NCBI GenBank assembly: GCA_020891255.1
Contig: BQFW01000001.1
Coordinates: forward strand, 2,852,001-2,916,000
Source: Entomortierella parvispora E1425
Lineage: Eukaryota > Fungi > Mortierellomycota
Length of the DNA: 64,000 bases
Direction: 5' to 3'
Below the pieces are notes generated by a model, which was not told the DNA's origin, did not search any database, and saw only the letters and a program-made list of their open reading frames with translations. How positions within the stretch are numbered: the first letter of the stretch is position 1; every line of letters starts with the position of its first letter. Position numbers and translations under genes: made by a program. Below are positions 1 to 29,397 of the stretch, in pieces.

Positions 1-52
1 CTACCGCCACGCCATTCAAGACGACCACCTTCCCTACCCACTTCCTTACATC

Positions 53-976
53 ATGAATCAACATCAACACAACTTCGACGACGATATTGACGATGAACCC
101 AACACGTCAAGCTATCACGCCGCCTCCACCTTCACCGTTCCCGAACCTGTAATCCACAATGATCGTCCCTAAAAGAACCTTTTGCCCTCGGATCATGAAA
201 CTTTCAATGGCACCTGCTCCCACCACGAGGCCCGAGCATGGTTGCTACAGACAGAGTTGATTGCAGACATCAGTGAGATTCCTAGACCGAAATGGCCCAG
301 AGCCGCGATTGCCAAGCTTCGAGGTGACGCAAGAGTCTGGGGCCTGAATTACAACTCACTCCACACCAATGCCACGTGGGACACTTTCTCAGCCGCCTTT
401 TTAAGTCAGTTCAGCTCAGAAGACTTGGAAGAGACCCTTCGCAACGAACTCGATAGTGTTGTCTGGGAAAAGACAGACACCCCCAACACCTTCTTCCACC
501 GTTTTCAGTTTGCTTTGATGCCTCTTGGTACCAATGTATCTGAAGGAGAAAAAGTACACGTCTTCAAGACCCGAAGTCCACAATTTTTGCGAAAATTTCT
601 GATCGAACACCAAGTCAAAACCTGGCAACAAGTCCGCCAACACTGTGAAATCCGAACAGAGATGAGCACAAGCCTTGGTATCATTTCCCAATCCGCGCAG
701 AACCGAATCAACCAAGCCAGACAAACGCCGCCGTCTCGCCCTTTTGTTGCTCCATCACGCTTTGGTTCCCCAAGACTTTTCCAACACCACGCTGCTGCAA
801 CAGCCCCGCCCCCTCGTCCCTCTCACATTACTGGAAACCCCACTACTGGTTTTTCAACTGGAAAACGCGTTAGTTTCTCTGGTCATCCGTTTTCACGCCC
901 TCCAGATCGACGAGACAGCACCCAAAACCAAAAATCAAAGTCAAGGTCGTCGATCTTCGATGGATATGGACGTTGA
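53..976 (+). pseudogene. gag: Element A gag (capsid region) with in-frame TAA at 170-172 and a frameshift near 900-930
   Basis: ATG at 53 is in frame with ORF 182..976 but separated by TAA; retrotransposon gag-like W/F pattern; zinc knuckles continue in another frame. Confidence 0.75.
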
Positions 977-1391
977 TGTGTTCAACATCGAGTGCCACAA
1001 TTGCGGAGACAATCACAAGGCCGCAGAATGCCCCAAGCCGCAAACTTGTTATAACTGTGGACAGCGAGGACACTACAAACGCGACTGCCCTCAAGGAGGA
1101 CAAAACCAAGGACGACCACAACGAAGGAATCGCCCAAACGTGAACATCAACATGACCCATATCGATCCACAAGATTTCAAGCCCGAAACTTGCCCATTGA
1201 TGGTCGTACCCCTCTACGTCGACGGTTGGCAATTCGACGCCCTTTTTGATAACGGCGCCAACGTCAACGTTATTTCTTCTCGTGCCCTCGAAGTTATCCG
1301 TGAAGAATCCCCGGAATCCATCCTCGATGAAAAACGAATCTATGAGCCGACCCCTGTACGAACAGCCCATGCAGGGAGACCTAGGTGCTAA
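930..1391 (+). pseudogene. Element A nucleocapsid (2x CCHC) and N-terminal half of protease
   Basis: CHNCGDNHKAAEC and CYNCGQRGHYKRDC; FDALFDNGANVNVIS in ORF 675..1391; protease continues in the next frame near 1370. Confidence 0.85.
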
Positions 1392-3491
1392 GGCACTAGG
1401 CGAAGTCATCCTTCGAGTTGTTATTGGAGAACACACCTGCCGTTTCACAGCCACGGTTGTTCCCGACCTAGCTCACGATGTTTTCATTGGACTTCCATGG
1501 ATGTTCCGCTACAAACCTCAAATCAATTGGGATCGCTACTCATTGACTTGGCAAGTCAATGGCCGAAAACACGAAGCCATCGCCAGATCTCAGCCCGCCA
1601 GTACCCTTCTGCAGAACGAACAGGTACCTGAACTTGCATATGTGCAGACGAACGCACAGCGGTTCTTACACACCATGGCCGCCGATGATACACAAGAAGC
1701 AGGAATCGTTTGGTTAATGAAAACCCACGTTCCAGAACACACCCGAGCAGAAGAGCTCATGACCAACCCGGACCTGACAGTAGAACAGCAAGCTCAAATC
1801 GATGAGATAGTGAAGGAGTACCAGCAGGATGTATTCGCTCCACTCTCAGAGATGCCACCAGCCCGTCCCGGTTTCGATCACCAAATCCCCACTGGAGTAA
1901 CAAGTCCTGTGGTCAAGAAGATATATAAGATGTCACCCCTCGAGCTCAAGACTCTCAAAGAACAGTTGGATGAGCTGTTACGGTTGGGGTACATCCAGCC
2001 CTCAACGTCGCCGTGGGCCGCACCAGTCCTGTTCGTCAAGAAGAAAGATGGAACATTGAGACTGTGCATCGACTATCGTGGACTCAACGCCGTCACGATC
2101 AAGAACAAGTATTTTCTCCCGCACACCGATGAATTTTTCGATCGCATGCGAGGAGCCCGTTATTTCAGCAAGTTGGATCTCCAGCAGGGATATCATCAAC
2201 TTCAAGTTGCAGAAGAGGACAGACCCAAGACAGCGTTCTCTACCCGATATGGACACTACGAGTACTGTGTCATGGCTTTTGGTCTTACCAACGCGCCCGC
2301 GTCGTTTCAAGCCTTCATGAATACGATTTTCAGTAAAGAGTTGGATCAGTTCGTTGTTGTCTACCTCGACGACATCCTGATCTACTCCAAGACTTTCGAA
2401 GAACACTTGAAGCACATCCGAACAGTGCTATCAACGCTGCGAAAACATCACCTACATGCCAAGCAGAGCAAATGTGCGTTTGGATTATCCAGCATCACCT
2501 TCGTCGGACATGTGATATCCTACGATGGAATTCAAGTGGATCCAGCCAAGGTCGCAGTTGTCAAGAACTGGCCCACCCCAACCAACGTACAAGAGCTTCG
2601 TTCATTCATTGGATTTGTGAACTACCATCGCCGTCATATTTTCCACCATGCCGAAGTCACTGCTTGTCTTACAGACTTGTTGACCACTGGTCCAGGCCCA
2701 AACAAAGGAAAGTTGCGACCCGTGCCTACTTGGGGCCCAGTTCAACAAGCTGCTTTCGATGGAATCAAAGAACTTCTAGCGACTACCCCTGTATTGTGCC
2801 TTGGACACCCCGATGAGCCGTACTATATGGAAACCGATGCATCCGACATTGCCACAGGAGGAGTCCTTTATCAGATGCACGAAGGCAAAAGACACCCAGT
2901 TGCCTATGAGTCACGAAAACTTAAGCCAGCCGAGAAGAACTACCCGGTCCATGAGAAGGAACTCCTCGCCATTGTTCACGCATGCAGAGCATGGCGCACG
3001 TTTATTCTTGGCGCCCCCGAAAACGTGGTCTACACTGACCATGCAAGTCTACGATTTTTGTTGACCCAGCCACACCTGAGCCCGAGAATGACCCGTTGGG
3101 TTGAATTTTTGGCCCCCTACAACCTGTCGATCCAGTATAAGGCAGGAGCCACCAACATCGCTGCAGATGCGCTTTCCAGATTGCAAGTCAACAATGTGAC
3201 AGCAGGACGTCACATCGACACTTGGGATTGGCCGTTGCTTGTCCCTGCATTTCTGGATGATGGTTCTTTTCCGCCCCATACCGATGGAGACACCAAGAAG
3301 AGAGTCCGCAAGGAGGCTCATAACTTCACGACTGATGACGACGAATTGCGCTACATGGTTGAAGGAAGAGCAGTTCCCTTCGTTCCGTTTGCAGAGCGCG
3401 CAGATCGTCTCATTGAGTTGCACATCAAACACAAGGCTACGTCTGCTTACCATCCAAGGTCGAATGGAAAGTGTGAGCGTCTCAATGGTGT
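1370..3491 (+). pseudogene. pol: Element A pol: protease C-half, RT, RNase H, internally deleted integrase
   Basis: ORF 1246..3510: LRLCIDYRGLN, VYLDDILI, ETDASD, ADALSR, then AYHPRSNGKCERLNG; cut by B1 LTR at 3492. Confidence 0.92.
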
Positions 3492-3602
3492 TGTAACAGG
3501 AATACGGTGACATCACGCGATGTGTACCTACAAAAGCTAGAAACTTGCAATATAATAAAACTCACTTCTTGTCTCCACTCCACCCTCGATACTCCTATTG
3601 CA
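3492..3602 (+). repeat. B1 5' LTR (111 bp)
   Basis: TGTAACA...ATTGCA; identical to the three other copies. Confidence 0.97.
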
Positions 3603-3633
3603 TGGTAGCAAAGGTTTTCGATCCACTGACCTC
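3603..3633 (+). promoter_or_regulatory. B1 primer-binding site, tRNA-iMet type, extended
   Basis: TGGTAGCAAAGGTTTTCGATCCACTGACCTC directly after the LTR; resembles the reverse complement of the eukaryotic initiator tRNA 3' half. Confidence 0.8.
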
Positions 3634-3720
3634 ACTGACCCACTGACCCTCCGACACACTTACACCCTGGACCCCCTCGTATCCCTCTTCGATCAACTCT
3701 CCCTCGACAATTCACCCAAC

Positions 3721-4641
3721 ATGGACCCCGCGACACCGTCATTCAAATTCCCTCATCCAACACCGTTCAACGGCAAGCGCGACGGATTCTCTGTTCTCGG
3801 TTTTCTGAAACGCATGACCTTTTTCTTCGATGGCGCTGGAATTGCCGAACCTCGCAAGGTCGGGGTTACCCTTGCCTTTGCCGGCGATGAGGTTATCGGC
3901 TGGTGGGCACTCTTAAACAAGCCATCCGACACCTCATTCCCGGATTTCAGCGAGCTCCTTGCCACCGAGTTCAGTCCTGCGAAGTTTAAGGAGCACATTC
4001 TCGCCCTCACAATGCAAATGAAAATGACACTACCATTGAACATCTCCAACGTCATGGCCTATATTACCAAAGCCCGTGAATACCACCTGCTCCTCCAGTC
4101 TTACTACGCCGACAACGCAGTTCTCAACGATACTATCCGTACTGCCTTTCTCAGTGGTGCACCTACTCAGCTTCGCCAGATGCTGGAAGTGGCCATTGTT
4201 AATGCAGGCAACGACACCATAGATCTGCCCAGACTCTTCAAGGCCGCGGAGGAGTTCGGTCGTATCTTCCACACTGGAGACCCATCACTCGGTGCCAAAG
4301 CACTGGCTGCCTCGGGATCCTCTGCTGGTATCACCGACCCCAACGCAATGGAAGTGGACAATATTCATATCCAACTCAACAATATCCATAAGCAACTCGG
4401 CACCCTTCACCGCTCCTTACAGAACCGCCCCACCAACGGTACTAACAACCCTTCTCGAGATCGCCCCGCACCCCTGACCGCCGCCGACCGAGAGTACCTT
4501 GTACGTAACGGTGGCTGCTTCCGCTGCCGCGAATTGGGTCACATCAGTCCCAATTGCCCTAAGTACGGCAACGGCAGCCGAGGAATTAATCAAGTAACCG
4601 CGGGTGAATCCCCTGATTCGGGAAAAGCCTCCGGCAACTAG
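3721..4641 (+). CDS. gag: B1 Gag with CCHC knuckle
   Basis: P-TPFNGKRD gag motif, AMEVD, CFRCRELGHISPNC; intact ORF. Confidence 0.92.
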   Translation: MDPATPSFKFPHPTPFNGKRDGFSVLGFLKRMTFFFDGAGIAEPRKVGVTLAFAGDEVIGWWALLNKPSDTSFPDFSELLATEFSPAKFKEHILALTMQMKMTLPLNISNVMAYITKAREYHLLLQSYYADNAVLNDTIRTAFLSGAPTQLRQMLEVAIVNAGNDTIDLPRLFKAAEEFGRIFHTGDPSLGAKALAASGSSAGITDPNAMEVDNIHIQLNNIHKQLGTLHRSLQNRPTNGTNNPSRDRPAPLTAADREYLVRNGGCFRCRELGHISPNCPKYGNGSRGINQVTAGESPDSGKASGN

Positions 4642-4664
4642 GGTCGGTCCGGACCCCAGTTGTC
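4620..4664 (+). promoter_or_regulatory. Putative -1 ribosomal frameshift signal (gag-pol)
   Basis: G GGA AAA heptamer in gag frame, 6-nt spacer, then hairpin ggcaact-agggtc/gacccc-agttgtc; the -1 frame is open. Confidence 0.7.
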
Positions 4665-7372
4665 GAAACTGTAGCCAACAACCCTGAGCTAAGTACCTCA
4701 AATAAAACTTCACTTGATTCTACACCTCAGAAACATGACTCCAATCATGACAAGCGAACTCACATCCACGATGCTCTGGTTGTTCTATCGGACCGAAACC
4801 AAAACCAAACCAAAAAACCTGTTGCCTCGCCCGCTCCAGTTGCCCTGTCCGCTCCTCTACCTAGATCCTCCGATACAGATGAACCGGACCCTCTCGCTGT
4901 ACCGCCGGCACCTAGTGTACCTCTGTCCAAAAAGTCAGTTGAAGAAGTTGAAGCGTCGTGCGATTCGCCTACACGAATTCACTGTCCAAAAGGCAGAGAG
5001 CCAACTGCTCACTTTCATCGGTTCTGTCAATGGCCACGCTGCCAGAATCCTGATTGATGGTGGTGCAGAAGGTAATATTATCAGTTCGTCTTTTCAAAAG
5101 CGACACCAGCTCCTCCGCACTGAATGCTTGCCCATCCCCATCCTCCTCCCCAATGGCTCTTCCTCCCTCACATCACACACCGTCCCCATCACCCTCAACC
5201 GCAGCGACTACTCCGATTCGCTCAACCCTATTCTCTATCCTCTCAACAAATACGACCTCATCCTTGGCAAACCCTGGCTCACCAAAGTTAACCCTTGCAT
5301 CAATTGGCGCACCAACGATCTTCATTTCACTCACAATGGAATCGATGTCAAATGGAGCTGCCGCGGCTTCAAGGCCGATCACATCCAAAGCCGCACCAAA
5401 GGACTCCTCCTCACACACATGCACTTTCATTCCATGGCAACCCTGCCCGGCTCGGAGGTGTTCCTGGCCCTTATTCGCAACACCCCAGAGCCCTCTGAAG
5501 AAACTGACCAACCGCGTACAATTCCCGATATGACCCCCAGAGGTGCGGTCCATTGTCATGGAAGAGTTCGCTGATGTCTTTCCGGAGAAACTCCCGGACG
5601 GCCTGCCCCTAGACCGTGGTGATGCTATGAAGATCGAGACCGACCCGACAGCCGACCCACCCTTCCGCCCTGTCATTAGACTTTCAATCGCCGAGCTTGA
5701 CGAACTTCGCAAACAACTGGACCAATTGCTAGCAGCAGGTTTTATCAAACCCAGTACCTCTCCCTATGGCGCCCCCGTGCTCTTTGTGCGGAAGAAGGAC
5801 GGCACACTCCGAATGTGCGTCGACTACCGTGGCCTCAACAAGATCACCAGGAAGAACAGACACCCGTTGCCCCGTATCGACGAGCTACTTGACCGCTTCC
5901 GTGGAGCACGCTATTACTCCAAGTTGGACTTGTTATCCGGTTATCATCAGCAGCGTATCTTTGAACCACACACACACAAGACTGCCTTCCGTTGTCGCTA
6001 TGGTCACTTTGAGTTCAATGTTGTTCCCTTTGGCCTTACTAACGCTCCTGCTTCGTTCTCCAATATGATGTTGCGAGTACTCGATCCAGTCTTGGACAAA
6101 TGGGTTGTCGTGTATCTCGACGATCTGTTGATCTACTCCAAGACAAAGAAAGAACACCTGCAGCATCTCCGAAGCGTCCTGGCTCTCCTCCGCAAGAATG
6201 GTCTGTACGCGAAATTGAGCAAGTGCTCCTTCATGCAAGACGAAACTGAATTTTTGGGCCACACCATCACGAAGGACGGGATCAAAACATCGGCCGGGCT
6301 CAGCAAAGCCATCAGTGACTGGCCCACCCCCAAGAGCACAAAGGACGTCCAGCAATTTTTGGGGCTTGCGCAATTTTATCAACAGTACGTATCGGGCTTT
6401 GCAGGGATTGCCCTCCCTCTCTCTTCCCTCCTCGCCAACAACACTCCCTTCAAATGGACCGACGAACAACAATCTGCATTCCTTCAGCTCAAACGCGCCA
6501 TCTGCTCCGCCCCCGTCCTCCGCATCTTCGACCCTGATCTCTCACCTTTGTCGAAACAGATGCATCCGGTTTCGCCATCGGTGCAGTGCTGCTGCAGACT
6601 GACCGGGAAGGGAATACCCATCCCATCGCATTCACTTCCAGGAAAAATGCAGTCAGCTGAGCGGAACTACCCTGTCCATGAGCAGGAACTGTTGGCTGTC
6701 ATCCATGCGCTCCGCACTTGGCGCTACTACCTCGATGGAACCAAGTTCAGCGTCCACACCGACCACGCCACCCTCCGCCACTTCCCCACACAGCCCAAAC
6801 TCACTCGTCGACAGGCTCGCTGGATGGAGTTGCTTCAGGAATACGACTTTGACTTCAAGTACAAGCGAGGAGTTGACAACATCGTCCCAGACGCTCTCTC
6901 CCGACGACCGGACTACCGCGAGCCTGACCCTGTTGAGCTATACAACCTCAGCGTCTCCCTGTCCCCGGACGTCCGTGACCAGCTTGTCCAGGACTACAAC
7001 GACGATCCTCGACTTGGACCCATCTACAAGGATTGCCTGGATGGGAAGGTTGCCAATGGATATTCATTCCAGAACAACCTCCTCTACTTTACCCGACGTG
7101 GAGCAACCACCCTGGCCATCCCTCGGCACTCCCCGATCCGCCTCACTCTCTTGCACGACGCTCACGACTCTGCCACTGCTGGACACTTTGGTTTTCAAAA
7201 GACTTACGACAACCTGCGCCGTTTCGTATATTGGCCCCACATCGCCAAGGATACCCAGCAGTATGTAGCAACCTGCGAGAAGTGTCAAAGGAACAAGGAC
7301 TCACAGGATCGACCAGCTGGACTCTTGCAACCGCTACCCATTCCTTCGCAACGTTGGGAGGTAGTCACCATG
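4620..7372 (+). pseudogene. pol: B1 pol 5' part (protease, RT, RNase H, integrase zinc finger) with several 1-nt indels
   Basis: LIDGGAEGN, LRMCVDYRGLN, VYLDDLLI, DALSRR, GHFG...CEKC; frame breaks near 4930, 5535, 6540 and 6647. Confidence 0.92.
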
Positions 7373-7483
7373 TGCAATAGGAGTATCGAGGGTGGAGTGG
7401 AGACAAGAAGTGAGTTTTATTATATTGCAAGTTTCTAGCTTTTGTAGGTACACATCGCGTGATGTCACCGTATTCCTGTTACA
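7373..7483 (-). repeat. B2 3' LTR (111 bp)
   Basis: Exact reverse complement of the B1 LTR. Confidence 0.97.
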
Positions 7484-7493
7484 CCTTCCCCTT

Positions 7494-10400
7494 TTAAAAA
7501 ATGATACCGTGCTGCTCTTTGAAGGTTGTGACCAAGTCCATGCAGTTGTCCAAGTTGCTTACTGGGAGCCATTCGTCAGCTTCTCTGCCGTAGCCTTTGA
7601 ATGACACTAGGAACTGGTGTTGTCTGCGGTAGAAGCGGTACTTTAAAATTTCGTCCACTTCATACTCCTCTTCGCCGTCAATTACAGTGGGATCCACGGG
7701 GGCAGGAGCTCGAATGCCGAGTGACTCCGGGGACGGCAAATAGGGTCGAAAGGTATCAACGTGGAAGACGTCATGGATTTTGTAGAATGGTGGCAGCTCG
7801 ACGCGGAAGGTGACAGGTGAGTGTTGCTCCAAAAGTGTGAACGGGCCAAGGAATTGAGGTCGAAGTTTATCGGCTGGTCTGATACTGTCGGCAGGGATGG
7901 TGATATTGGTGGCACGCAGCAGGACCTTATCGCCAACCTTGTACTTGTGATCCCGTCGTCGCTTGTTTGCCTGTTGCTCCTGATGATCCTGAGCACGCTG
8001 CAGAGCATCCTGGGCCAGGGCAAGGGTGGTCGCCTGCTCAGTCAGGAAGGTATCGACAGTGGGGACTGAGCTGCTGGGTTTACCGAGGAGAGCGGTGGGG
8101 AGACGAGGGTGCTGGCCAGAGTTGAGGAAGAACGGCGAGTATCCCGTGGATGCATTGACAGCGTTGTTATAGGCGAATTCCAGTGACGGAAGGAGCTGGT
8201 CCCAGTTAGACTGCTTGTTGTCAATAAACGCTCTCAACATAGTCTTCAGCGTCTTGTTCATAACCTCTGTCTGCCCATCCGTCTGTGGGTGGTAGGCGGT
8301 TGACAGTGCAAGTTTGACATCCATTAGCCTGTGCAACTCTTGCCAGAATCTACTAGTGAATCGAGTGTCGCGGTCCGAGATGATGGATGTTGGTGTGCCA
8401 TGCAGCTTAAAGATGTTGTCAAAAAACTGGTGGGCGACGTCGACGGCTGTGGCAGAGGTAGTACTGGGGACGAAGTGAGCTTGCTTGGTCAGCTTGTCGA
8501 CAAACACTGTGATGGCGTCAAAATTTCTAGCTGTGGGCGGAAGAGGGCCGATGAAGTCCATGGTGACTACCTCCCAACGTTGCGAAGGAATGGGTAGCGG
8601 TTGCAAGAGTCCAGCTGGTCGATCCTGTGAGTCCTTGTTCCTTTGACACTTCTCGCAGGTTGCTACATACTGCTGGGTATCCTTGGCGATGTGGGGCCAA
8701 TATACGAAACGGCGCAGGTTGTCGTAAGTCTTTTGAAAACCAAAGTGTCCAGCAGTGGCAGAGTCGTGAGCGTCGTGCAAGAGAGTGAGGCGGATCGGGG
8801 AGTGCCGAGGGATGGCCAGGGTGGTTGCTCCACGTCGGGTAAAGTAGAGGAGGTTGTTCTGGAATGAATATCCATTGGCAACCTTCCCATCCAGGCAATC
8901 CTTGTAGATGGGTCCAAGTCGAGGATCGTCGTTGTAGTCCTGGACAAGCTGGTCACGGACGTCCGGGGACAGGGAGACGCTGAGGTTGTATAGCTCAACA
9001 GGGTCAGGCTCGCGGTAGTCCGGTCGTCGGGAGAGAGCGTCTGGGACGATGTTGTCAACTCCTCGCTTGTACTTGAAGTCAAAGTCGTATTCCTGAAGCA
9101 ACTCCATCCAGCGAGCCTGTCGACGAGTGAGTTTGGGCTGTGTGGGGAAGTGGCGGAGGGTGGCGTGGTCGGTGTGGACGCTGAACTTGGTTCCATCGAG
9201 GTAGTAGCGCCAAGTGCGGAGCGCATGGATGACAGCCAACAGTTCCTGCTCATGGACAGGGTAGTTCCGCTCAGCTGACTGCATATTTTTCCTGGAAGTG
9301 AATGCGATGGGATGGGTATTCCCTTCCCGGTCAGTCTGCAGCAGCACTGCACCGATGGCGAAACCGGATGCATCTGTTTCGACAAAGGTGAGAGATCGGG
9401 GTCGAAGATGCGGAGGACGGGGGCGGAGCAGATGGCGCGTTTGAGCTGAAGGAATGCAGATTGTTGTTCGTCGGTCCATTTGAAGGGAGTGTTGTTGGCG
9501 AGGAGGGAAGAGAGAGGGAGGGCAATCCCTGCAAAGCCCGATACGTACTGTTGATAAAATTGCGCAAGCCCCAAAAATTGCTGGACGTCCTTTGTGCTCT
9601 TGGGGGTGGGCCAGTCACTGATGGCTTTGCTGAGCCCGGCCGATGTTTTGATCCCGTCCTTCGTGATGGTGTGGCCCAAAAATTCAGTTTCGTCTTGCAT
9701 GAAGGAGCACTTGCTCAATTTCGCGTACAGACCATTCTTGCGGAGGAGAGCCAGGACGCTTCGGAGATGCTGCAGGTGTTCTTTCTTTGTCTTGGAGTAG
9801 ATCAACAGATCGTCGAGATACACGACAACCCATTTGTCCAAGACTGGATCGAGTACTCGCAACATCATATTGGAGAACGAAGCAGGAGCGTTAGTAAGGC
9901 CAAAGGGAACAACATTGAACTCAAAGTGACCATAGCGACAACGGAAGGCAGTCTTGTGTGTGTGTGGTTCAAAGATACGCTGCTGATGATAACCGGATAA
10001 CAAGTCCAACTTGGAGTAATAGCGTGCTCCACGGAAGCGGTCAAGTAGCTCGTCGATACGGGGCAGCGGGTGTCTGTTCTTCCTGGTGATCTTGTTGAGG
10101 CCACGGTAGTCGACGCACATTCGGAGTGTGCCGTCCTTCTTCCGCACAAAGAGCACGGGGGCGCCATAGGGAGAGGTACTGGGTTTGATAAAACCTGCTG
10201 CTAGCAATTGGTCCAGTTGTTTGCGAAGTTCGTCAAGCTCGGCGATTGAAAGTCTAATGACAGGGCGGAAGGGTGGGTCGGCTGTCGGGTCGGTCTCGAT
10301 CTTCATAGCATCACCACGGTCTGGGGGCAGGCCGTCCGGGAGTTTCTCCGGAAAGACATCAGCGAACTCTTCCATGACAATGGACCGCACCTCTGGGGTC

Positions 10401-11312
10401 ATATCGGGAATTGTACGCGGTTGGTCAGTTTCTTCAGAGGGCTCTGGGGTGTTGCGAATAAGGGCCAGGAACACCTCCGAGCCGGGCAGGGTTGCCATGG
10501 AATGAAAGTGCATGTGTGTGAGGAGGAGTCCTTTGGTGCGGCTTTGGATGTGATCGGCCTTGAAGCCGCGGCAGCTCCATTTGACATCGATTCCATTGTG
10601 AGTGAAATGAAGATCGTTGGTGCGCCAATTGATGCAAGGGTTAACTTTGGTGAGCCAGGGTTTGCCAAGGATGAGGTCGTATTTGTTGAGAGGATAGAGA
10701 ATAGGGTTGAGCGAATCGGAGTAGTCGCTGCGGTTGAGGGTGATGGGGACGGTGTGTGATGTGAGGGAGGAAGAGCCATTGGGGAGGAGGATGGGGATGG
10801 GCAAGCATTCAGTGCGGAGGAGCTGGTGTCGCTTTTGAAAAGACGAACTGATAATATTACCTTCTGCACCACCATCAATCAGGATTCTGGCAGCGTGGCC
10901 ATTGACAGAACCGATGAAAGTGAGCAGTTGGCTCTCTGCCTTTTGGACAGTGAATTCGTGTAGGCGAATCGCACGACGCTTCAACTTCTTCAACTGACTT
11001 TTTGGACAGAGGTACACTAGGTGCCGGCGGTACAGCGAGAGGGTCCGGTTCATCTGTATCGGAGGATCTAGGTAGAGGAGCGGACAGGGCAACTGGAGCG
11101 GGCGAGGCAACAGGTTTTTTGGTTTGGTTTTGGTTTCGGTCCGATAGAACAACCAGAGCATCGTGGATGTGAGTTCGCTTGTCATGATTGGAGTCATGTT
11201 TCTGAGGTGTAGAATCAAGTGAAGTTTTATTTGAGGTACTTAGCTCAGGGTTGTTGGCTACAGTTTCGACAACTGGGGTCCGGACCGACCCTAGTTGCCG
11301 GAGGCTTTTCCC
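7494..11312 (-). pseudogene. pol: B2 pol (PR-RT-RH-IN-chromodomain) with two apparent frameshifts
   Basis: ORFs 8663..11218 and 7494..9479 together give a complete pol; breaks near 11000 and 9390. Confidence 0.92.
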
Positions 11313-12211
11313 GAATCAGGGGATTCACCCGCGGTTACTTGATTAATTCCTCGGCTGCCGTTGCCGTACTTAGGGCAATTGGGACTGATGTGACCCAATT
11401 CGCGGCAGCGGAAGCAGCCACCGTTACGTACAAGGTACTCTCGGTCGGCGGCGGTCAGGGGTGCGGGGCGATCTCGAGAAGGGTTGTTAGTACCGTTGGT
11501 GGGGCGGTTCTGTAAGGAGCGGTGAAGGGTGCCGAGTTGCTTGTGGATATTGTTGAGTTGGATATGAATATTGTCCACTTCCATTGCGTTGGGGTCGGTG
11601 ATACCAGCAGAGGATCCCGAGGCAGCCAGTGCTTTGGCACCGAGTGATGGGTCTTCAGTGTGGAAGATACGACCGAACTCCTCCGCGGCCTTAAAGAGTC
11701 TGGGCAGATCTATGGTGTCGTTGCCTGCATTAACAATGGCCACTTCCAGCATCTGGCGAAGCTGAGTAGGTGCACCACTGAGAAAGGCAGTACGGATAGT
11801 ATCGTTGAGAACTGCGTTGTCGGCGTAGTAAGACTGGAGGAGTAGGTGGTATTCACGGGCTTTGGTAATATAGGCCATGACGTTGGAGATGTTCAGTGGC
11901 AGTGTCATTTTCATTTGCATTGTGAGGGCGAGAATGTGCTCCTTAAACTTCGCAGGGCTGAACTCGGCGGCAAGGAGCTCGCTGAAATCCGGGAATGAGG
12001 TGTCGGATGGCTTGTTTAAGAGTGCCCACCAGCCGATAACCTCATCGCCGGCAAAGGCAAGGGTAACCCCGACCTTGCGAGATTCGGCAATTCCAGCGCC
12101 ATCGAAGAAAAAGGTCATGCGTTTCAGAAAACCGAGAACAGAGAATCCGTCGCGCTTGCCGTTGAACGGTGTTGGATGAGGGAATTTGAATGACGGTGTC
12201 GCGGAGTCCAT
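11291..12211 (-). CDS. gag: B2 Gag
   Basis: Near-identical to B1 Gag with a few substitutions (e.g. DPATP/DSATP, AEPRK/AESRK, HTGDP/HTEDP). Confidence 0.92.
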   Translation of the reverse strand: MDSATPSFKFPHPTPFNGKRDGFSVLGFLKRMTFFFDGAGIAESRKVGVTLAFAGDEVIGWWALLNKPSDTSFPDFSELLAAEFSPAKFKEHILALTMQMKMTLPLNISNVMAYITKAREYHLLLQSYYADNAVLNDTIRTAFLSGAPTQLRQMLEVAIVNAGNDTIDLPRLFKAAEEFGRIFHTEDPSLGAKALAASGSSAGITDPNAMEVDNIHIQLNNIHKQLGTLHRSLQNRPTNGTNNPSRDRPAPLTAADREYLVRNGGCFRCRELGHISPNCPKYGNGSRGINQVTAGESPDSGKASGN

Positions 12212-12329
12212 GTTGGGTGAATTGTCGAGGGAGAGTTGATCGAAGAGGGATACGAGGGGGTCCAGGGTGTGAGTGTGTCGGAGGGTCAGTGGGTCAGTGA
12301 GGTCAGTGGATCGAAAACCTTTGCTACCA

Positions 12330-12440
12330 TGCAATAGGAGTATCGAGGGTGGAGTGGAGACAAGAAGTGAGTTTTATTATATTGCAAGTTTCTAGCTTTT
12401 GTAGGTACACATCGCGTGATGTCACCGTATTCCTGTTACA
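12330..12440 (-). repeat. B2 5' LTR (111 bp)
   Basis: Exact reverse complement of the B1 LTR, followed on the minus strand by the TGGTAGCA PBS. Confidence 0.97.
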
Positions 12441-13510
12441 CCATGGACTTCATCGGCCCTCTTCCGCCCACAGCTAGAAATTTTGACGCCATCACAGTGT
12501 TTGTCGACAAGCTGACCAAGCAAGCTCACTTCGTCCCCAGTACTACCTCTGCCACAGCCGTCGACGTCGCCCACCAGTTTTTTGACAACATCTTTAAGCT
12601 GCATGGCACACCAACATCCATCATCTCGGACCGCGACACTCGATTCACTAGTAGATTCTGGCAAGAGTTGCACAGGCTAATGGATGTCAAACTTGCACTG
12701 TCAACCGCCTACCACCCACAGACGGATGGGCAGACAGAGGTTATGAACAAGACGCTGAAGACTATGTTGAGAGCGTTTATTGACAACAAGCAGTCTAACT
12801 GGGACCAGCTCCTTCCGTCACTGGAATTCGCCTATAACAACGCTGTCAATGCATCCACGGGATACTCGCCGTTCTTCCTCAACTCTGGCCAGCACCCTCG
12901 TCTCCCCACCGCTCTCCTCGGTAAACCCAGCAGCTCAGTCCCCACTGTCGATACCTTCCTGACTGAGCAGGCGACCACCCTTGCCCTGGCCCAGGATGCT
13001 CTGCAGCGTGCTCAGGATCATCAGGAGCAACAGGCAAACAAGCGACGACGGGATCACAAGTACAAGGTTGGCGATAAGGTCCTGCTGCGTGCCACCAATA
13101 TCACCATCCCTGCCGACAGTATCAGACCAGCCGATAAACTTCGACCTCAATTCCTTGGCCCGTTCACACTTTTGGAGCAACACTCACCTGTCACCTTCCG
13201 CGTCGAGCTGCCACCATTCTACAAAATCCATGACGTCTTCCACGTTGATACCTTTCGACCCTATTTGCCGTCCCCGGAGTCACTCGGCATTCGAGCTCCT
13301 GCCCCCGTGGATCCCACTGTAATTGACGGCGAAGAGGAGTATGAAGTGGACGAAATTTTAAAGTACCGCTTCTACCGCAGACAACACCAGTTCCTAGTGT
13401 CATTCAAAGGCTACGGCAGAGAAGCTGACGAATGGCTCCCAGTAAGCAACTTGGACAACTGCATGGACTTGGTCACAACCTTCAAAGAGCAGCACGGTAT
13501 CATTTTTTAA
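12441..13510 (+). pseudogene. pol: B1 integrase core, GPF motif and chromodomain (separated from its 5' part by B2)
   Basis: MDFIGPLP, SDRD, AYHPQTDGQTE, FLGPF, EEEYEVDEIL...FLVSFKGY...EW. Confidence 0.95.
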
Positions 13511-13520
13511 AAGGGGAAGG
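13509..13520 (+). promoter_or_regulatory. B1 polypurine tract
   Basis: AAAAGGGGAAGG abutting the 3' LTR and overlapping the pol stop codon. Confidence 0.9.
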
Positions 13521-13631
13521 TGTAACAGGAATACGGTGACATCACGCGATGTGTACCTACAAAAGCTAGAAACTTGCAATATAATAAAACTCACTTCTTG
13601 TCTCCACTCCACCCTCGATACTCCTATTGCA
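13521..13631 (+). repeat. B1 3' LTR (111 bp)
   Basis: Identical to 3492-3602. Confidence 0.97.
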
Positions 13632-14645
13632 GGTGTTATCGGACACATGTTGAGCAAGTATGTGGGTACACACATCCACAGCTGGGATCAGTACCTGCAC
13701 CAGAGTCTGTTCGCTTGTCGCGTACACATCTCTCAGCGAACCAAGGTCAGCCCATTTCAACTTGTTTATGGACTTGAACCCCGTTTGCCGCAAGATCCAG
13801 TACGCCCATTCTTGTTTGATTTTCAAGATCAAGACGATTTTGCAGAACATCGTCGCAAGACTTTTCGAGAAATCGACGCCCTCCGAGAAAAGCACCTGCA
13901 GGCCCAGCAGACCGCCGCAGATGATATGGCCGCACACCATGAAGAGACACACACGGTCACCGATCATAAGTTCGCAGTTGGTGATTTTGTCCTGGTCAAG
14001 AACTTCGGCCGTACGAAGCTTCAACCCCATTTTTATGGCCCGCTGGAAGTGATCCGTATTACGCCCTTGTCGACTTATCAGCTCCGCTGGGGAGATGGTG
14101 AGTTGAAGACGGCCTTAGTACACCAAGACCGTCTTAAGCGTGCTTATCCGCCAGATGAAGCATCTGCACGCCGTGCTTGGGTCACTAAGACAAAGCACAC
14201 CATGGAGCAAGCCAACGACAACTCTGACGATGGTCTTCCAATTGAAAGCCGCACTGAGGAGGAACAGCGCGTGGAGGAGGCCCTCGCTCTTAGAACCGCC
14301 AATGAAGATTACCTTGCCCGTCGCGATCAACTTGGCACTTACGAACCGCCTATGATGGGTTCCGCCGCTGAAGCTGCCCGCGTGTACAGACAGGCACTTG
14401 CTGCTTCTGCCCCGAAGCCTCGTCGCCGTGGCCAACGTACTCGCGAACCCAGAGTCAATCAGTTGCAGGCAGGCCGAGGACGGCCTGAAGCCTGTGGGGG
14501 GAGTGTCGTGAATCAGACTGCTTTTATCCCCGCCAGCTCCGCGTCTGATCACATGACTTACGATCACCTGACCGCCGACACGCCTGATGAATGGACCCTT
14601 GTTGCGCGCCCTCATTGCACTTGTGCCGCGCGTCATCGTCGTTGA
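13632..14645 (+). pseudogene. Element A integrase C-terminal part (no chromodomain), running into the 3' LTR
   Basis: Resumes VIGHMLSKYV after TSD; SPFQLVYG, VGDFVLV, FYGPLEV and VHQDRLK motifs. Confidence 0.9.
14491..14503 (+). promoter_or_regulatory. Polypurine tract of element A
   Basis: cctgtggggggag immediately before TGTCGTGA. Confidence 0.7.
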
Positions 14646-15111
14646 CTATCACCAGGTCGACTACCCTCAACCGTGTATACTCACGAACGGAGCATTTCAT
14701 GTTTCTCCGACATTAACCTACCAACCGTTGCCAATCAAAAGCTTGTCTCCACGCCGGTCGACCAAGCTCTTTGAAACCTCGGACGTTAGGGCCCCTATTC
14801 CAGAATAGTCATAAGCCCTTCACTATTTATTTCCATAGTGTCAGCAGTATAGTCTCACTTCACTACCTTCAGTATATAAGTAGCTCTGTATCGAGACTTA
14901 GAACGGCATCCTTTCTTTGCCCTTCCATCTCGATTACAGGTAACCCTCTTGAGAACCCTATCAGTAGTAACACACAGAATATCTTATTAAACATATCCTT
15001 TCTTTGCCCTTCCATCTCGATTACAGTCAAGGTAGCTGACTGTGGTGCCCAGTGTAGAAGAACACGCTCGACACACCCTAAGGATCAGTCGTGATACCGA
15101 GAGTCACGACA
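14504..15111 (+). repeat. 3' LTR of element A (608 bp)
   Basis: Terminal inverted repeats TGTCGTGA...TCACGACA; follows the PPT; TATATAAG at 14873-14880. The partner LTR is outside the window, so the boundary rests on the TIR. Confidence 0.8.
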
Positions 15112-15164
15112 ACGACCTGGTTTCGGCGGTCGGGGAAATACAAGAGATATCACGTGACTCGGTG

Positions 15165-15884
15165 TCTTTGGCGATTTCGCAAAAACACTGGTATCGCTGC
15201 ATTCCACGACTTGCCAACAATAAGACCTCCTGAAGTGGGACAGACTGCCTCTCCACTGCCGTCGGCACGGTCGATCGTCACTGCCTACCAAGGACTGTTA
15301 CACTCGGCGCTGATCACAGCCTGGACACCGATTATTAAAGGACCCCGCTCGGTTGTGGTCGCAGTTGCTCACCAGTTTATCCGCCGCCTGGACAGAGACG
15401 CCCTTGCACGTATCTGGAAGACACGGTGCGAAGTCACCATTGCCTGGGAGAAGTCACAAGGCATCCGCCCCAAGATGAAAAAACAAGCAGCCCCGTCGGG
15501 GCAGCCGTGGAACAATGCCTCTGGTGCGATCCTTGCGCCAGGCACCTGCCAATGCGGCAAGGCTTACACTGACCACCACAAAGGCCTCTGCCCAGGTGTC
15601 CAAGACGATCCTACGCTGGCTGACCAGCGACTACTGGCTTGTGTGCGTGGCCAGGTTCACTTATCGACATTAGAAAAGATGGGGAAGATCCATTTTTTGT
15701 AACAATTTACTCTTCTTTATAACACGGCGACGAGTCGTGGCATTTGTTGCGCGGGGATCCGGGGTCATTTGTCGTCTGGACCACGCGGCTTTGCTCAGGT
15801 TGTAGATAGTTTGGTCTCGCACTTCACTTCTTTGGCTCGACATAGCAAATAAAATGTTGCAAAAAAAAAAAAAAAAAAAAAAAA
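15165..15884 (+). mobile_element. 5'-truncated non-LTR retrotransposon (LINE, L1/Tx1-like) copy L-a; 5' boundary approximate
   Basis: ORF2-type C-terminus (IWKTRC...AWEKSQGI; C-x-C-x6-H-x4-C), stop at 15702, ~158-nt 3' UTR, AATAAA, A24 tail; homologous copies at 27.7-28.5 kb. Clade assignment is inferred. Confidence 0.85.
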
Positions 15885-27111: not shown

Positions 27112-27553
27112 ATATAGCTTCGTTTTTGCCACTTTGGGCCTGGAACACAGCGCTCCTTTTTCGTGCAGTGTATCTCTGCACCAAGTCCATGCAACTCTTT
27201 TTTTGTTTTTCAAAGGACCAACCACAACACCATAAACTTTCCCCACTGACCCTTCGGTGTACTATTGCCTTGGAAGATAAGCCTGGTACAAACCATTGTA
27301 ATTACTTACTTCGTAGCTCATCATTATCCTGAACCCCAAGAAACTGCAATATGAGATTCGGCCCGCCTAGATGAAAAGGAAAAAAAGGACAGTTGAAAAG
27401 ACGATTGACAGTCATAATATGTCTACCCCGGGATTGACGAGCAGACAAACTGGTCAGGAACGTACTGTACTTGAAAGCTCCCGCCGGGGTCAAGACTGGC
27501 AAAAAAAGGCGACATTCGTCGGTTGGATTGTTCCAGAAAACTGGAGCAAAAAG

Positions 27554-27636
27554 TGAAGAGAGTGGGATTTGAACCCACGCCTACGAATAGACCGCGGCCT
27601 TAACGCGGCGCCTTAGACCAACTCGGCCATCTCTCC
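27554..27636 (-). tRNA. tRNA-Leu(AAG) copy 1
   Basis: Acceptor GGAGAGA/TCTCTTC, anticodon arm CCGCG-ttAAGgc-CGCGG, long variable arm, GGTTCAAAT T-loop. Confidence 0.97.
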
Positions 27637-27684
27637 AACTTCTTGTTATTCTTCAATTCTCAGCCATTTTTGATTCCAGCGAAT

Positions 27685-27690
27685 CACGTG
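27685..27690. promoter_or_regulatory. CACGTG box 48 bp upstream of tRNA-Leu copy 1
   Basis: atCACGTGac. Confidence 0.6.
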
Positions 27691-27741
27691 ACTGCGGGCA
27701 CAAAGGCGTCGAGGGCAACGAAAAGGCGGTTGAGATCGCGC

Positions 27742-28182
27742 GTGGTTGCATGGGAGAAGACACAAGGTATCCGCCCCAAGATGAAGAAGCAAGCCCAGAC
27801 TGGGCAACCGTGGAACAATGCCTCTGGTACGATCTTACCACCGGACACTTGCCAATGCGGAAAGCCTAACACCGACCACCATCAAGGCCTCTGCCCTGGT
27901 GCCCAAGACAATCCCACGCTGGCCGACCAGCGCTTACTGGCTTGTGTGCGTGGCCAGGTTCACTTATCGACATTAGAAAAGATGGGGAAGATCCATTTTT
28001 TGTAACATTTTACTCTTCTTTATTACACGGTGACGAGCCGTGGCATTTGTTGCGCGGGGATCCGGGGTCTTTGTTCGTCTGGACCACGCGGCTTTGCTCA
28101 GGTTGTAGATAGTTTGGTATCGCACTTCACTTCTTTGGCTCGACATAGCAAATAAAATGTTGCAAAAAAAAAAAAAAAAAAA
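27742..28182 (+). mobile_element. 5'-truncated LINE copy L-b
   Basis: Same ORF2 C-terminus and 3' UTR as L-a; A19 tail; flanked by GGTTGAGATCGCGCGT at 27728-27743 and 28183-28198. Confidence 0.92.
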
Positions 28183-28196
28183 GGTTGAGATCGCGC

Positions 28197-28342
28197 GTGG
28201 CATTTGTTGCGCGGGGATCCGGGGTCATTTGTCGTCTGGACCACGCGGCTTTACTCAGGTTGTAGATAGTTTGGTATCGCACTTCACTTCTTTGGCTCGA
28301 CATAGCAAATAAAATGTTGCAAAAAAAAAAAAAAAAAAAAAA
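28197..28342 (+). mobile_element. 5'-truncated LINE copy L-c (3' UTR only)
   Basis: 3' UTR segment plus A22 tail, followed by GCGGTTGAGATCGCG at 28343-28357. Confidence 0.9.
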
Positions 28343-28357
28343 GCGGTTGAGATCGCG

Positions 28358-28473
28358 TCTTAGTTCGTCTGGACCACGCGGCTTTGCTCAGGTTGTGGAT
28401 AGCTTGGTCTCGCACTTCACTTCTTTGTCTCAACATAGCAAAAAAAAGCAAAAAAAAATGTTGAAAAAAAAAA
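28358..28473 (+). mobile_element. 5'-truncated, degenerate LINE copy L-d
   Basis: Diverged 3' UTR end with an interrupted A-rich tail. Confidence 0.8.
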
Positions 28474-28740
28474 TGCATGGTTTTTTTTTTTGTTGTTGTA
28501 ACTTTGATACCATTGTCGAGACCCTTGGAGAGAAGAGACTGGTCTCGCGACCAGGACAAGTATATTTTAACAATACTGAGAATGTTTGTATAATGAGATG
28601 CAACGATCTGACAAGATCACCAGAGTCAATGGCGAAGGGCGCGATTCTTGGACTCAGCATGCTGAAAAGTCAGCATGCTTTTGTATCAGTCCGGTGAATG
28701 CTCTGTAGAGGTACGTCGGATCTCCCTAAGGATGGGTATC

Positions 28741-29397
28741 TCAAGCTTGACGGCAAACAAGAATGTGTTTTGTGCATTGGGCCCTGTGGATAGAGTACTC
28801 ACAGACTTGTCTGTGCTGTTGCAGTTTTGGAATGAAGTCTGCTCTTTGCTCGACCTCGCAGCTCATTCCACTTGACTCGAGAATTTTTCGACTGGCCATA
28901 TTTTCAATGTAGGCGCTTCCACGAACAACGTCAACTTTAAACTCTTTAAAGAGGATCTCATGGACGACAAACCAGGCTGATCGAGAACTATAGCCCTGCC
29001 GCGTGTATTCGGGGCTCACCCAGTATCCAATATCCGCCAACTTGACTGGTTTGCCTGTTTCTGGATGAAGATCCTTGACATCCGGTTCAAAATAGGCATG
29101 GATCCATCCAATCAGGGGTCCATCGGGTGAGGTTCGCATAGCCCAGTGGGTGTTGAAGCCCTTCTCATGATATCCAAGAGCCCGTCGGACTCTTACCTCA
29201 GCATGCGATTCGAGGTAAGGGTATTGAAACGAAGCGGTGCCGTCGTAGATGTCTTTGGAAAGATTTAGTACCCGAACCATCTCTGGGATATCGGACATCT
29301 TCACGGTGGAGAGATAATGAGGGGGGTCACTTGAGACCATGTAGGGGCCCATGGCTGTCGGCGCTGGTGTCTGACCTTGATCCTGCTGAAGTGTCAT
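28741..29397 (-). CDS. GNAT acetyltransferase (RimJ/RimL-like)
   Basis: ADIGYWVSPEYTRQGYS, ENMASRKILESSGM; intronless, 218 aa. Confidence 0.85.
   Translation of the reverse strand: MTLQQDQGQTPAPTAMGPYMVSSDPPHYLSTVKMSDIPEMVRVLNLSKDIYDGTASFQYPYLESHAEVRVRRALGYHEKGFNTHWAMRTSPDGPLIGWIHAYFEPDVKDLHPETGKPVKLADIGYWVSPEYTRQGYSSRSAWFVVHEILFKEFKVDVVRGSAYIENMASRKILESSGMSCEVEQRADFIPKLQQHRQVCEYSIHRAQCTKHILVCRQA

Follow-up and report, generated by a model that had tools for sequence, protein, structure and literature searches.

A recently active LINE of the fungus Entomortierella parvispora probably inserts at a set distance upstream of tRNA genes

Introduction

Non-long terminal repeat (non-LTR) retrotransposons directed to genes transcribed by RNA polymerase III (Pol III) have been reviewed only from dictyostelids, where they comprise TRE5, TRE3, NLTR-A, and NLTR-B (PMC5911963), and in the literature searched the only elements reported at the tRNA genes of fungi are LTR elements. 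Here we analyze a 64,000-nucleotide (nt) stretch of contig BQFW01000001.1 of Entomortierella parvispora E1425 (the window), in which three copies of a poly(A)-tailed long interspersed nuclear element (LINE) are stacked upstream of a tRNA-Leu(AAG) gene, together with further copies of the same element elsewhere in the assembly (38.9 Mb in 20 contigs). We put the probability at about 0.85 that this element is a recently active non-LTR retrotransposon that integrates at a fixed position upstream of tRNA genes, and we regard the targeting of tRNA genes, taken by itself, as more certain still.

A first-pass annotation of the window had called the element TRE5-like, a description that stands for its fixed-distance, oriented targeting of tRNA genes and fails for its architecture and for the distance. 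Like TRE5-A, TRE5-B, and TRE5-C of Dictyostelium discoideum, the element is poly(A) tailed, is found at many tRNA genes at a fixed upstream distance and in the opposite orientation, and shows no dependence on the target sequence; the host genome is compact in both cases and also harbors a tRNA-targeting Ty3/gypsy element (DGLT-A there, an element with 607-bp LTRs here). However, TRE5 inserts 44 to 54 bp upstream of tRNA genes (PMC5911963), compared with about 95 bp here, and open reading frame 2 (ORF2) of TRE5 encodes an apurinic/apyrimidinic endonuclease (APE)-type domain, a reverse transcriptase (RT), and a zinc finger, without RNase H (PMC5911963), whereas the fungal ORF2 has an RNase H and a long linker. 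The host of TRE5 is an amoebozoan rather than a fungus, and the binding of TFIIIB by ORF1p and the dependence of targeting on the B box (PMC5911963) are results obtained with TRE5-A. The element described here therefore works like TRE5 but is not a TRE, and with its RNase H it departs from the TRE/L1-like architecture.

Other described systems share single features with it. NLTR-B of Polysphondylium pallidum and NLTR-A of D. purpureum are non-LTR elements found upstream of tRNA genes that have an RNase H instead of the zinc finger, a likeness by description and not by sequence; both are dictyostelid elements, and they insert 39 to 64 bp and 2 to 6 bp upstream, respectively. Ty3 and Ty1 of Saccharomyces and other fungal LTR elements likewise use Pol III genes as safe havens, and the insertion window of Ty1 begins about 80 bp upstream, but these are LTR elements with an integrase; Ty3 inserts at the transcription start, and Ty1 insertion is nucleosome periodic and not strict in orientation. 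Among fungal LINEs, those bearing RNase H (Tad1/I-type) have the same ORF2 order of APE, RT, and RNase H, a comparison by domain order and not by phylogeny; to our knowledge, tRNA targeting is not known for any of them. No description of a tRNA-targeting LINE from a fungus, or from Mortierella in particular, was found in the open-access literature (Repbase lay outside the scope of the search).

A stack of LINE insertions upstream of tRNA-Leu(AAG)

There are exactly three occurrences of the 13-mer GGTTGAGATCGCG in the window (27728, 28183, and 28345); 100 dinucleotide-preserving shuffles of the window contained no exact match. After every occurrence comes the 3' end of one repeat family, closing in a run of A residues (copies a, b, and c) (Table 1). 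All three copies are 5' truncated and directed away from tRNA-Leu(AAG), lying head-to-head with it. The first-pass annotation had described three truncated LINE copies of this orientation, each behind a target copy, with the insertion site about 92 to 107 bp upstream of the tRNA gene, and the coordinates in Table 1 bear this out.

The duplications that flank the copies record the order in which they arrived. Copy a made an 18-bp duplication (27728-27745, repeated at 28183-28200), the final 5 nt of which (CGTGG) are the opening bases of copy b. Because the duplication of copy a includes the first bases of copy b, copy a must have inserted after copy b. Copy b made a 15-bp duplication (27726-27740, repeated at 28343-28357), which abuts the first base of copy c. 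Copy a is thus the youngest and copy c the oldest of the three, and the earlier observation that the outermost copy is the most decayed holds when the copies are aligned to a 5.7-kb reference copy from elsewhere in the genome. It is scarcely credible that the stack arose by tandem duplication or unequal crossing-over, or that the association with tRNA genes was spread by segmental duplication. Units of target plus LINE do repeat head to tail, and one pair of loci elsewhere (L047 and L048) shares the 3' part of the LINE and the 3' flank, but the LINE parts of the three units in the window measure 437, 147, and about 117 bp, and the units also differ in truncation point, in tail length, in duplication length (18 and 15 bp), and in sequence variants, and the nested duplications refute tandem duplication for the window. 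Across loci, the tRNA species, the flanks, and the duplications all differ. The copies are independent insertions, as had been proposed.

Nothing target-like lies beyond the tail of copy c, the outermost copy, again in agreement with the earlier account. The flank past that tail (28484-28800) is single copy, which rules out an inverted retroelement as the reason for the missing terminal target copy.

The three copies are not the whole history of the site. Upstream of copy a, the segment 27694-27740 matches the subfamily represented at L036 at 33 of 35 nt and the young copy at 32 of 44 nt, and it retains a conserved RNase H motif; the homologous part is a 45-nt stretch, and the reused target lies within it. 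The target itself is part of an older LINE remnant, and the locus has therefore taken at least four LINE insertions, not three. A second allele comes from run X3, a further sample of this organism, in which the flanks differ by about 4%; on a contig of 2752 nt, positions 27691 and 28518 are separated by 90 other letters. The block 27692-28517 is wholly absent from this allele, and the breakpoint (27691/27692) coincides with the left edge of the LINE-derived remnant.

Table 1. Coordinates of the features discussed in the window
Feature	Position	Strand	Evidence	Remarks
tRNA-Leu(AAG)	27553-27636	minus	ARAGORN	Targeted Pol III gene; 5' end at 27636
CACGTG box	27685-27690	none		49 nt upstream of tRNA-Leu(AAG)
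Older LINE remnant, RNase H-coding region	27694-27740	plus	Homology to LINE	Holds the reused target
Proximal target copy	27726-27745	plus	Exact string identity	90-109 nt from tRNA 5' end
LINE copy a, 3' end including A18 tail	27746-28182	plus	99.8% identity	437 bp
Right copy of the 18-bp duplication of copy a	28183-28200	plus	Exact string identity
LINE copy b, including poly(A) tail	28196-28342	plus	97.3% identity	147 bp
Right copy of the 15-bp duplication of copy b	28343-28357	plus	Exact string identity
LINE copy c, decayed tail	28357-28473	plus	86.8% identity	About 117 bp
Fourth, older LINE copy	15197-15884	plus	85% identity
Right 607-bp LTR of Ty3/gypsy-like element	14505-15111	plus	LTR pairs

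Association with tRNA genes across the genome

A search of the assembly with the 136-nt 3' untranslated region (UTR) of the LINE gave at least 44 matches, six of them 100% identical. Flanks of 10 kb were taken for 20 regions and of 3 kb for the rest of the best 30, and tRNA genes were called with ARAGORN and with Rfam, where the tRNA search scored 63 of about 1,193 candidates. At 16 of the 24 resolved sites, a tRNA gene on the opposite strand lies directly upstream of the LINE 5' junction, and the orientation is head-to-head at all 16. No tRNA gene is counted twice among these 16, and at least 13 anticodon types are represented (Val-AAC, Asn-GTT, Gly-TCC, Lys-TTT, Thr-AGT, Cys-GCA, Leu-AAG [two genes], Leu-TAA, Ala-AGC, Ala-CGC, Arg-TCG, Arg-CCT, Arg-ACG [two genes], and one tRNA just outside the window). 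If 1,200 tRNA genes and a 160-bp window in one orientation are assumed, the chance of such a position is about 0.0025 per insertion, and the probability of 16 in 24 arising by chance is below 1e-30. The Rfam search also placed a tRNA next to the copy at C13:622967 and another 2.7 kb from the copy at C9:1385562 (C and L numbers are our handles for contigs and loci).

Twelve insertion events have clean duplications, with the second duplication copy directly behind the tail. In these, the distance from the start of the duplication to the mature tRNA 5' end is 87 to 117 nt, with a mean of 96.8 and a standard deviation (SD) of 7.8. The duplications are 11 to 18 bp long and unrelated in sequence between sites; GGTTGAGATCGCG is absent from all other LINE loci and junctions examined, and no sequence consensus is visible at the nick across sites. 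Since the targets differ completely from site to site, the element is targeted by position and not by sequence, and it lacks the single target, common to all copies, that marks sequence-specific LINEs (R1, R2, and Tx1-like). The first-pass annotation would have given up a tRNA-tethered element if most copies had lain away from tRNA genes or had shared the target found in the window; neither is the case.

Random insertion followed by survival only in harmless regions upstream of tRNA genes is a very improbable explanation of this pattern. The genome is compact and a third of the copies lie elsewhere, as such a process would allow, but selection cannot yield an 8-nt SD in distance, a strict orientation, and repeated use of the same phosphodiester, and very young copies with 100% identical 3' UTRs are already at tRNA genes.

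Stacks elsewhere and the order of insertion

Stacks of copies occur at four loci, namely the one in the window (three copies), L033 (three), L040 (two), and L042 (two). At L033, four target copies alternate with LINE copies of 208, 1050, and 298 bp, and the duplications of the two proximal copies include the first 2 to 5 nt of the next copy outward; at L042, the newer duplication likewise includes the first bases of the older copy. Read outward from the tRNA gene, identity to the young reference is 99.8, 97.3, and 86.8% in the window, 100, 99.8, and 98.7% at L033, 98.5 and 93.9% at L040, and 99.6 and 87.8% at L042. All four stacks fit the earlier proposal that each new insertion lands at the same distance from the tRNA gene and pushes older copies outward. 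In every stack the left edges of successive duplications agree to within 2 nt, while the distal sequence is new after each insertion. Each new insertion reuses nearly the same nucleotide, and the proximal copy is the youngest; because the left edge stays fixed while the distal DNA changes, the anchor must be on the tRNA side. The stacks are thus a natural record of insertion order that can be read from nested duplications.

The CACGTG box upstream of tRNA genes

A CACGTG box stands between the tRNA gene and the target in the window, and insertions always lie just distal to the box, as would be expected if the element were tethered by a CACGTG-binding factor and not by the Pol III machinery. 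Of 17 tRNA genes sampled, 14 have the box 47 to 103 nt upstream, some of them with no LINE beside them. In tRNA upstream regions (in the window and at loci L031 to L050) the box mostly takes the form TCACGTGA, and such regions account for five of the eight CACGTG sites of the window (26971, 27685, 41646, 41666, and 15151). However, the spacing from box to target start varies from 2 to 45 nt, compared with 87 to 117 nt from the tRNA gene; box-less tRNA-Lys (L043), tRNA-Leu-TAA (L044), and tRNA-Arg (L030) genes carry insertions at the usual place; and the non-tRNA CACGTG sites in the window (373, 56523, and 63643) have no LINE. The variable spacing and the insertions at box-less genes argue that the tRNA gene, and not the box, sets the position, and tethering by a CACGTG-binding factor is accordingly improbable. 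The box belongs generally to the upstream regions of tRNA genes in this genome and is not the insertion ruler.

A Ty3/gypsy-like element in the same tRNA upstream regions

A fourth LINE copy in the window follows a CACGTG box at 15151, as the first-pass annotation had observed. The repeat immediately upstream of this copy was considered as a Pol III gene and rejected, since it is the LTR of a Ty3/gypsy-like element. The same 607-bp LTR (TGTCGTGA...TCACGACA) lies upstream of the stack at L040, and at many loci it forms 100% identical pairs 5.5 kb apart (at least 24 LTR matches, mostly paired). Window positions 1-3492 and 13632-15111, linked by internal homology, make up one such element, which starts before the window and is split by other gypsy and chromovirus-type elements nested over 10.1 kb (3493-13631). 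A minus-strand tRNA gene just before the window (C1:2851166-2851238) is 21 nt from the start of the left LTR of this element. At L040 (2155-8296), the LTR element lies 6 nt from tRNA-Cys, and without it the LINE target would be about 84 nt from the tRNA.

This young Ty3/gypsy-like element thus inserts 6 to 21 nt upstream of tRNA genes. Judging from the arrangement of the sequence, the fourth LINE copy lay originally about 100 bp upstream of the tRNA gene just outside the window, and the Ty3/gypsy-like element was inserted later between the two. L040 and the fourth copy are exceptions in appearance only, because a later Ty3/gypsy insertion separates tRNA and LINE in both, and the former proximity of the fourth copy to a tRNA gene explains the CACGTG box in front of it.

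Sites without a recognized tRNA gene

Several observations weigh against fixed-position targeting of tRNA genes. Neither ARAGORN nor Rfam found a tRNA at 8 of the 24 sites. Only about 58 nt separate the tRNA gene from the start of the older remnant in the window, a distance outside the range of 87 to 117 nt. In three of the four stacks (in the window and at L040 and L042) the outermost copy has no terminal target copy; recombination among the 3' UTRs of stacked copies could delete it. Finally, the sites examined cover no more than about half of the known copies, and the DNA examined stops short of the 5' end of L046, the sole intact copy.

Among the tRNA-less sites, no credible Pol III gene was detected at L035, L036, L041, L045, or L047 at the Rfam gathering threshold, at relaxed E values, or with relaxed ARAGORN settings. 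L032 is the only one with a clear tRNA-like unit at the right distance: it has motifs resembling an A and a B box and a T14 terminator, with a poly(A) tract about 97 nt upstream. At L047, a CACGTG box is accompanied by a weak tRNA-like call with a T run behind it, and nothing convincing was seen at L025, L035, L041, or L045. The young copy at L034 and the copy at L036 sit inside other retroelements. Off-target integration is real, and perhaps accounts for a quarter to a third of events.

A proposed mechanism of integration

We propose that target-primed reverse transcription inserts the element at a constant position in front of the tRNA gene. The first nick would fall on the strand with the tRNA sense sequence, at the tRNA-proximal edge of the duplication, about 95 bp (87 to 117 bp) from the mature 5' end, and the second nick 11 to 18 bp further out, a geometry that would always place the element head-to-head with the tRNA gene. 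A new insertion would hit the same nucleotide, within 2 nt, and push older copies outward. The precision, the proximal anchoring, and the lack of a consensus at the nick suggest that position is measured by a protein ruler on the tRNA gene. On the analogy of TRE5-A and Ty3, this ruler may be a protein of the element that contacts the Pol III preinitiation complex through TFIIIB, TFIIIC, or Pol III itself, and we lean modestly toward such a direct tether.

The main alternative to an anchor in the Pol III preinitiation complex is a positioned upstream nucleosome. Position could be read from chromatin, either from the edge or face of a nucleosome upstream of tRNA genes or from structures at replication forks stalled by them, and the nick at about -95 does lie beyond the footprint of yeast TFIIIB, which has its upstream limit at roughly -45. 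In addition, Ty1 uses nucleosomes upstream of Pol III genes (PMC5911963). However, the same nucleotide is used within 2 nt even after LINE sequence has replaced the distal DNA, which argues for an anchor on the tRNA side; the distances form a single sharp peak and not an 80-bp periodic pattern; and the orientation is strict at 16 of 16 sites. We therefore consider a chromatin-based ruler possible and the less likely of the two, and favor direct contact with the Pol III complex.

The element, its proteins, and its relatives

By its features the element is a LINE: ORF2 encodes an APE-type endonuclease and an RT, and the copies show the hallmarks of target-primed reverse transcription, being poly(A) tailed, truncated to various extents at the 5' end, and flanked by target-site duplications. 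The only intact copy is at L046 (on C2), and its 5' part has only one other match, a partial one, in the genome. ORF1 of this copy has at least 503 codons and runs past the DNA examined; ORF2 overlaps ORF1 and is open for 2361 codons. Pfam matches in ORF2 are to Exo_endo_phos (E = 2.8e-9), RVT_1 (E = 1.1e-14), and RNase_H (E = 5.6e-12), with the endonuclease at residues 85 to 318, the RT at 696 to 974, and the RNase H at 1847 to 1988. A long low-complexity and coiled-coil linker and C-terminal CCHC motifs complete the protein, the best solved relatives of which are LINE-1 ORF2p (E = 1.7e-20). Continued activity of the element is suggested by the one intact copy, by numerous very young copies, and by insertions that are present in one sample and absent from another. 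In the RNA runs searched, the stretch was found in none.

The closest relatives, found in an exhaustive protein search, belong to a family of ORF2 proteins that is 58% identical and comes from metagenome contigs; a word-based protein search found two relatives only, and the ESM Atlas matched only generic LINE clusters. In the 58%-identical relatives, ORF1 has 692 to 799 residues, with an RNA recognition motif (RRM; E = 1.9e-7) and a weak match to a CCHC zinc knuckle, and ORF1 of the present element is predicted to encode an RRM, CCHC-knuckle, and coiled-coil protein. Two of these contigs carry a full-length copy behind the tail of another copy and a 19- to 22-nt spacer, so that stacking occurs in these relatives as well; no tRNA was found on those short contigs. 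The nearest named relative is ORF2 protein P0002 of Rhizophagus irregularis (24% identity), and the Rhizophagus locus L059 has no tRNA in its vicinity. The relatives P0003, P0012, and P0002 have the same set of Pfam domains as ORF2 of L046. As for the host, the product of a SET-domain gene in the window is 55 to 65% identical to proteins of Gryganskiella, Modicella, Linnemannia, and Lunasporangiospora, from which the host is assigned to the Mortierellaceae.

Taken together with the comparisons made in the Introduction, these data suggest that an RNase H-bearing LINE of the Mortierellaceae probably evolved Pol III gene targeting independently of the dictyostelid TREs, with a longer ruler (~95 bp), and shares tRNA upstream regions with a Ty3/gypsy element. 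If so, the two fungal elements would be an undescribed counterpart of the TRE5/DGLT-A pair of Dictyostelium, in a group of transformable industrial fungi, and the LINE would be a clear example of safe-haven targeting that evolved convergently in compact genomes, with another protein architecture and at another distance. The LINE would also provide a second, independent system in which to ask how the Pol III apparatus positions a target-primed endonuclease, a question open to experiment since the element is apparently still active.

A more distant relative (29% identical), on a metagenome contig (L056; 299-480 and 7280-7340), shows a different arrangement. The LINE starts just downstream of a tRNA-Ala on the same strand, and the 3' half of this tRNA, together with the T run, recurs at the 3' end of the LINE, where the 5' end of a second copy follows it and poly(A) is absent. 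A tRNA-specific LINE of another kind may be represented here.

Other repeats and Pol III genes

No 5S rRNA genes lie near any listed LINE copy; the 5S rRNA genes form tandem arrays of about 1.4 kb near contig ends (C5:1897018, C11:8329, C16:121949, and C18:55693). L047 and L048 (C5:1799286 and C5:1349046) have the last 179 bp of the LINE in common, with identical 3' flanks and different 5' flanks, and represent a segmental duplication or a recombination with a breakpoint in the LINE. A second family of poly(A)-tailed retroelements occurs in or beside LINE copies at tRNA upstream regions (L049 at about 7640-7960 and, inverted, L036 upstream of 7318). A short repeat with GTAACTTTGGTAACTTTAAC recurs just distal to the LINE at three tRNA upstream regions (L031 after 8676; L037 at about 1600-1660 and after 8690). 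Pure A27 to A30 tracts without a LINE body are found at the usual target position at L032 (about 8010-8039), L044 (about 7392-7420), and L043 (after 8671) and may be fully truncated, tail-only insertions. At L043 and also at L039, tandem target copies occur without an insert.

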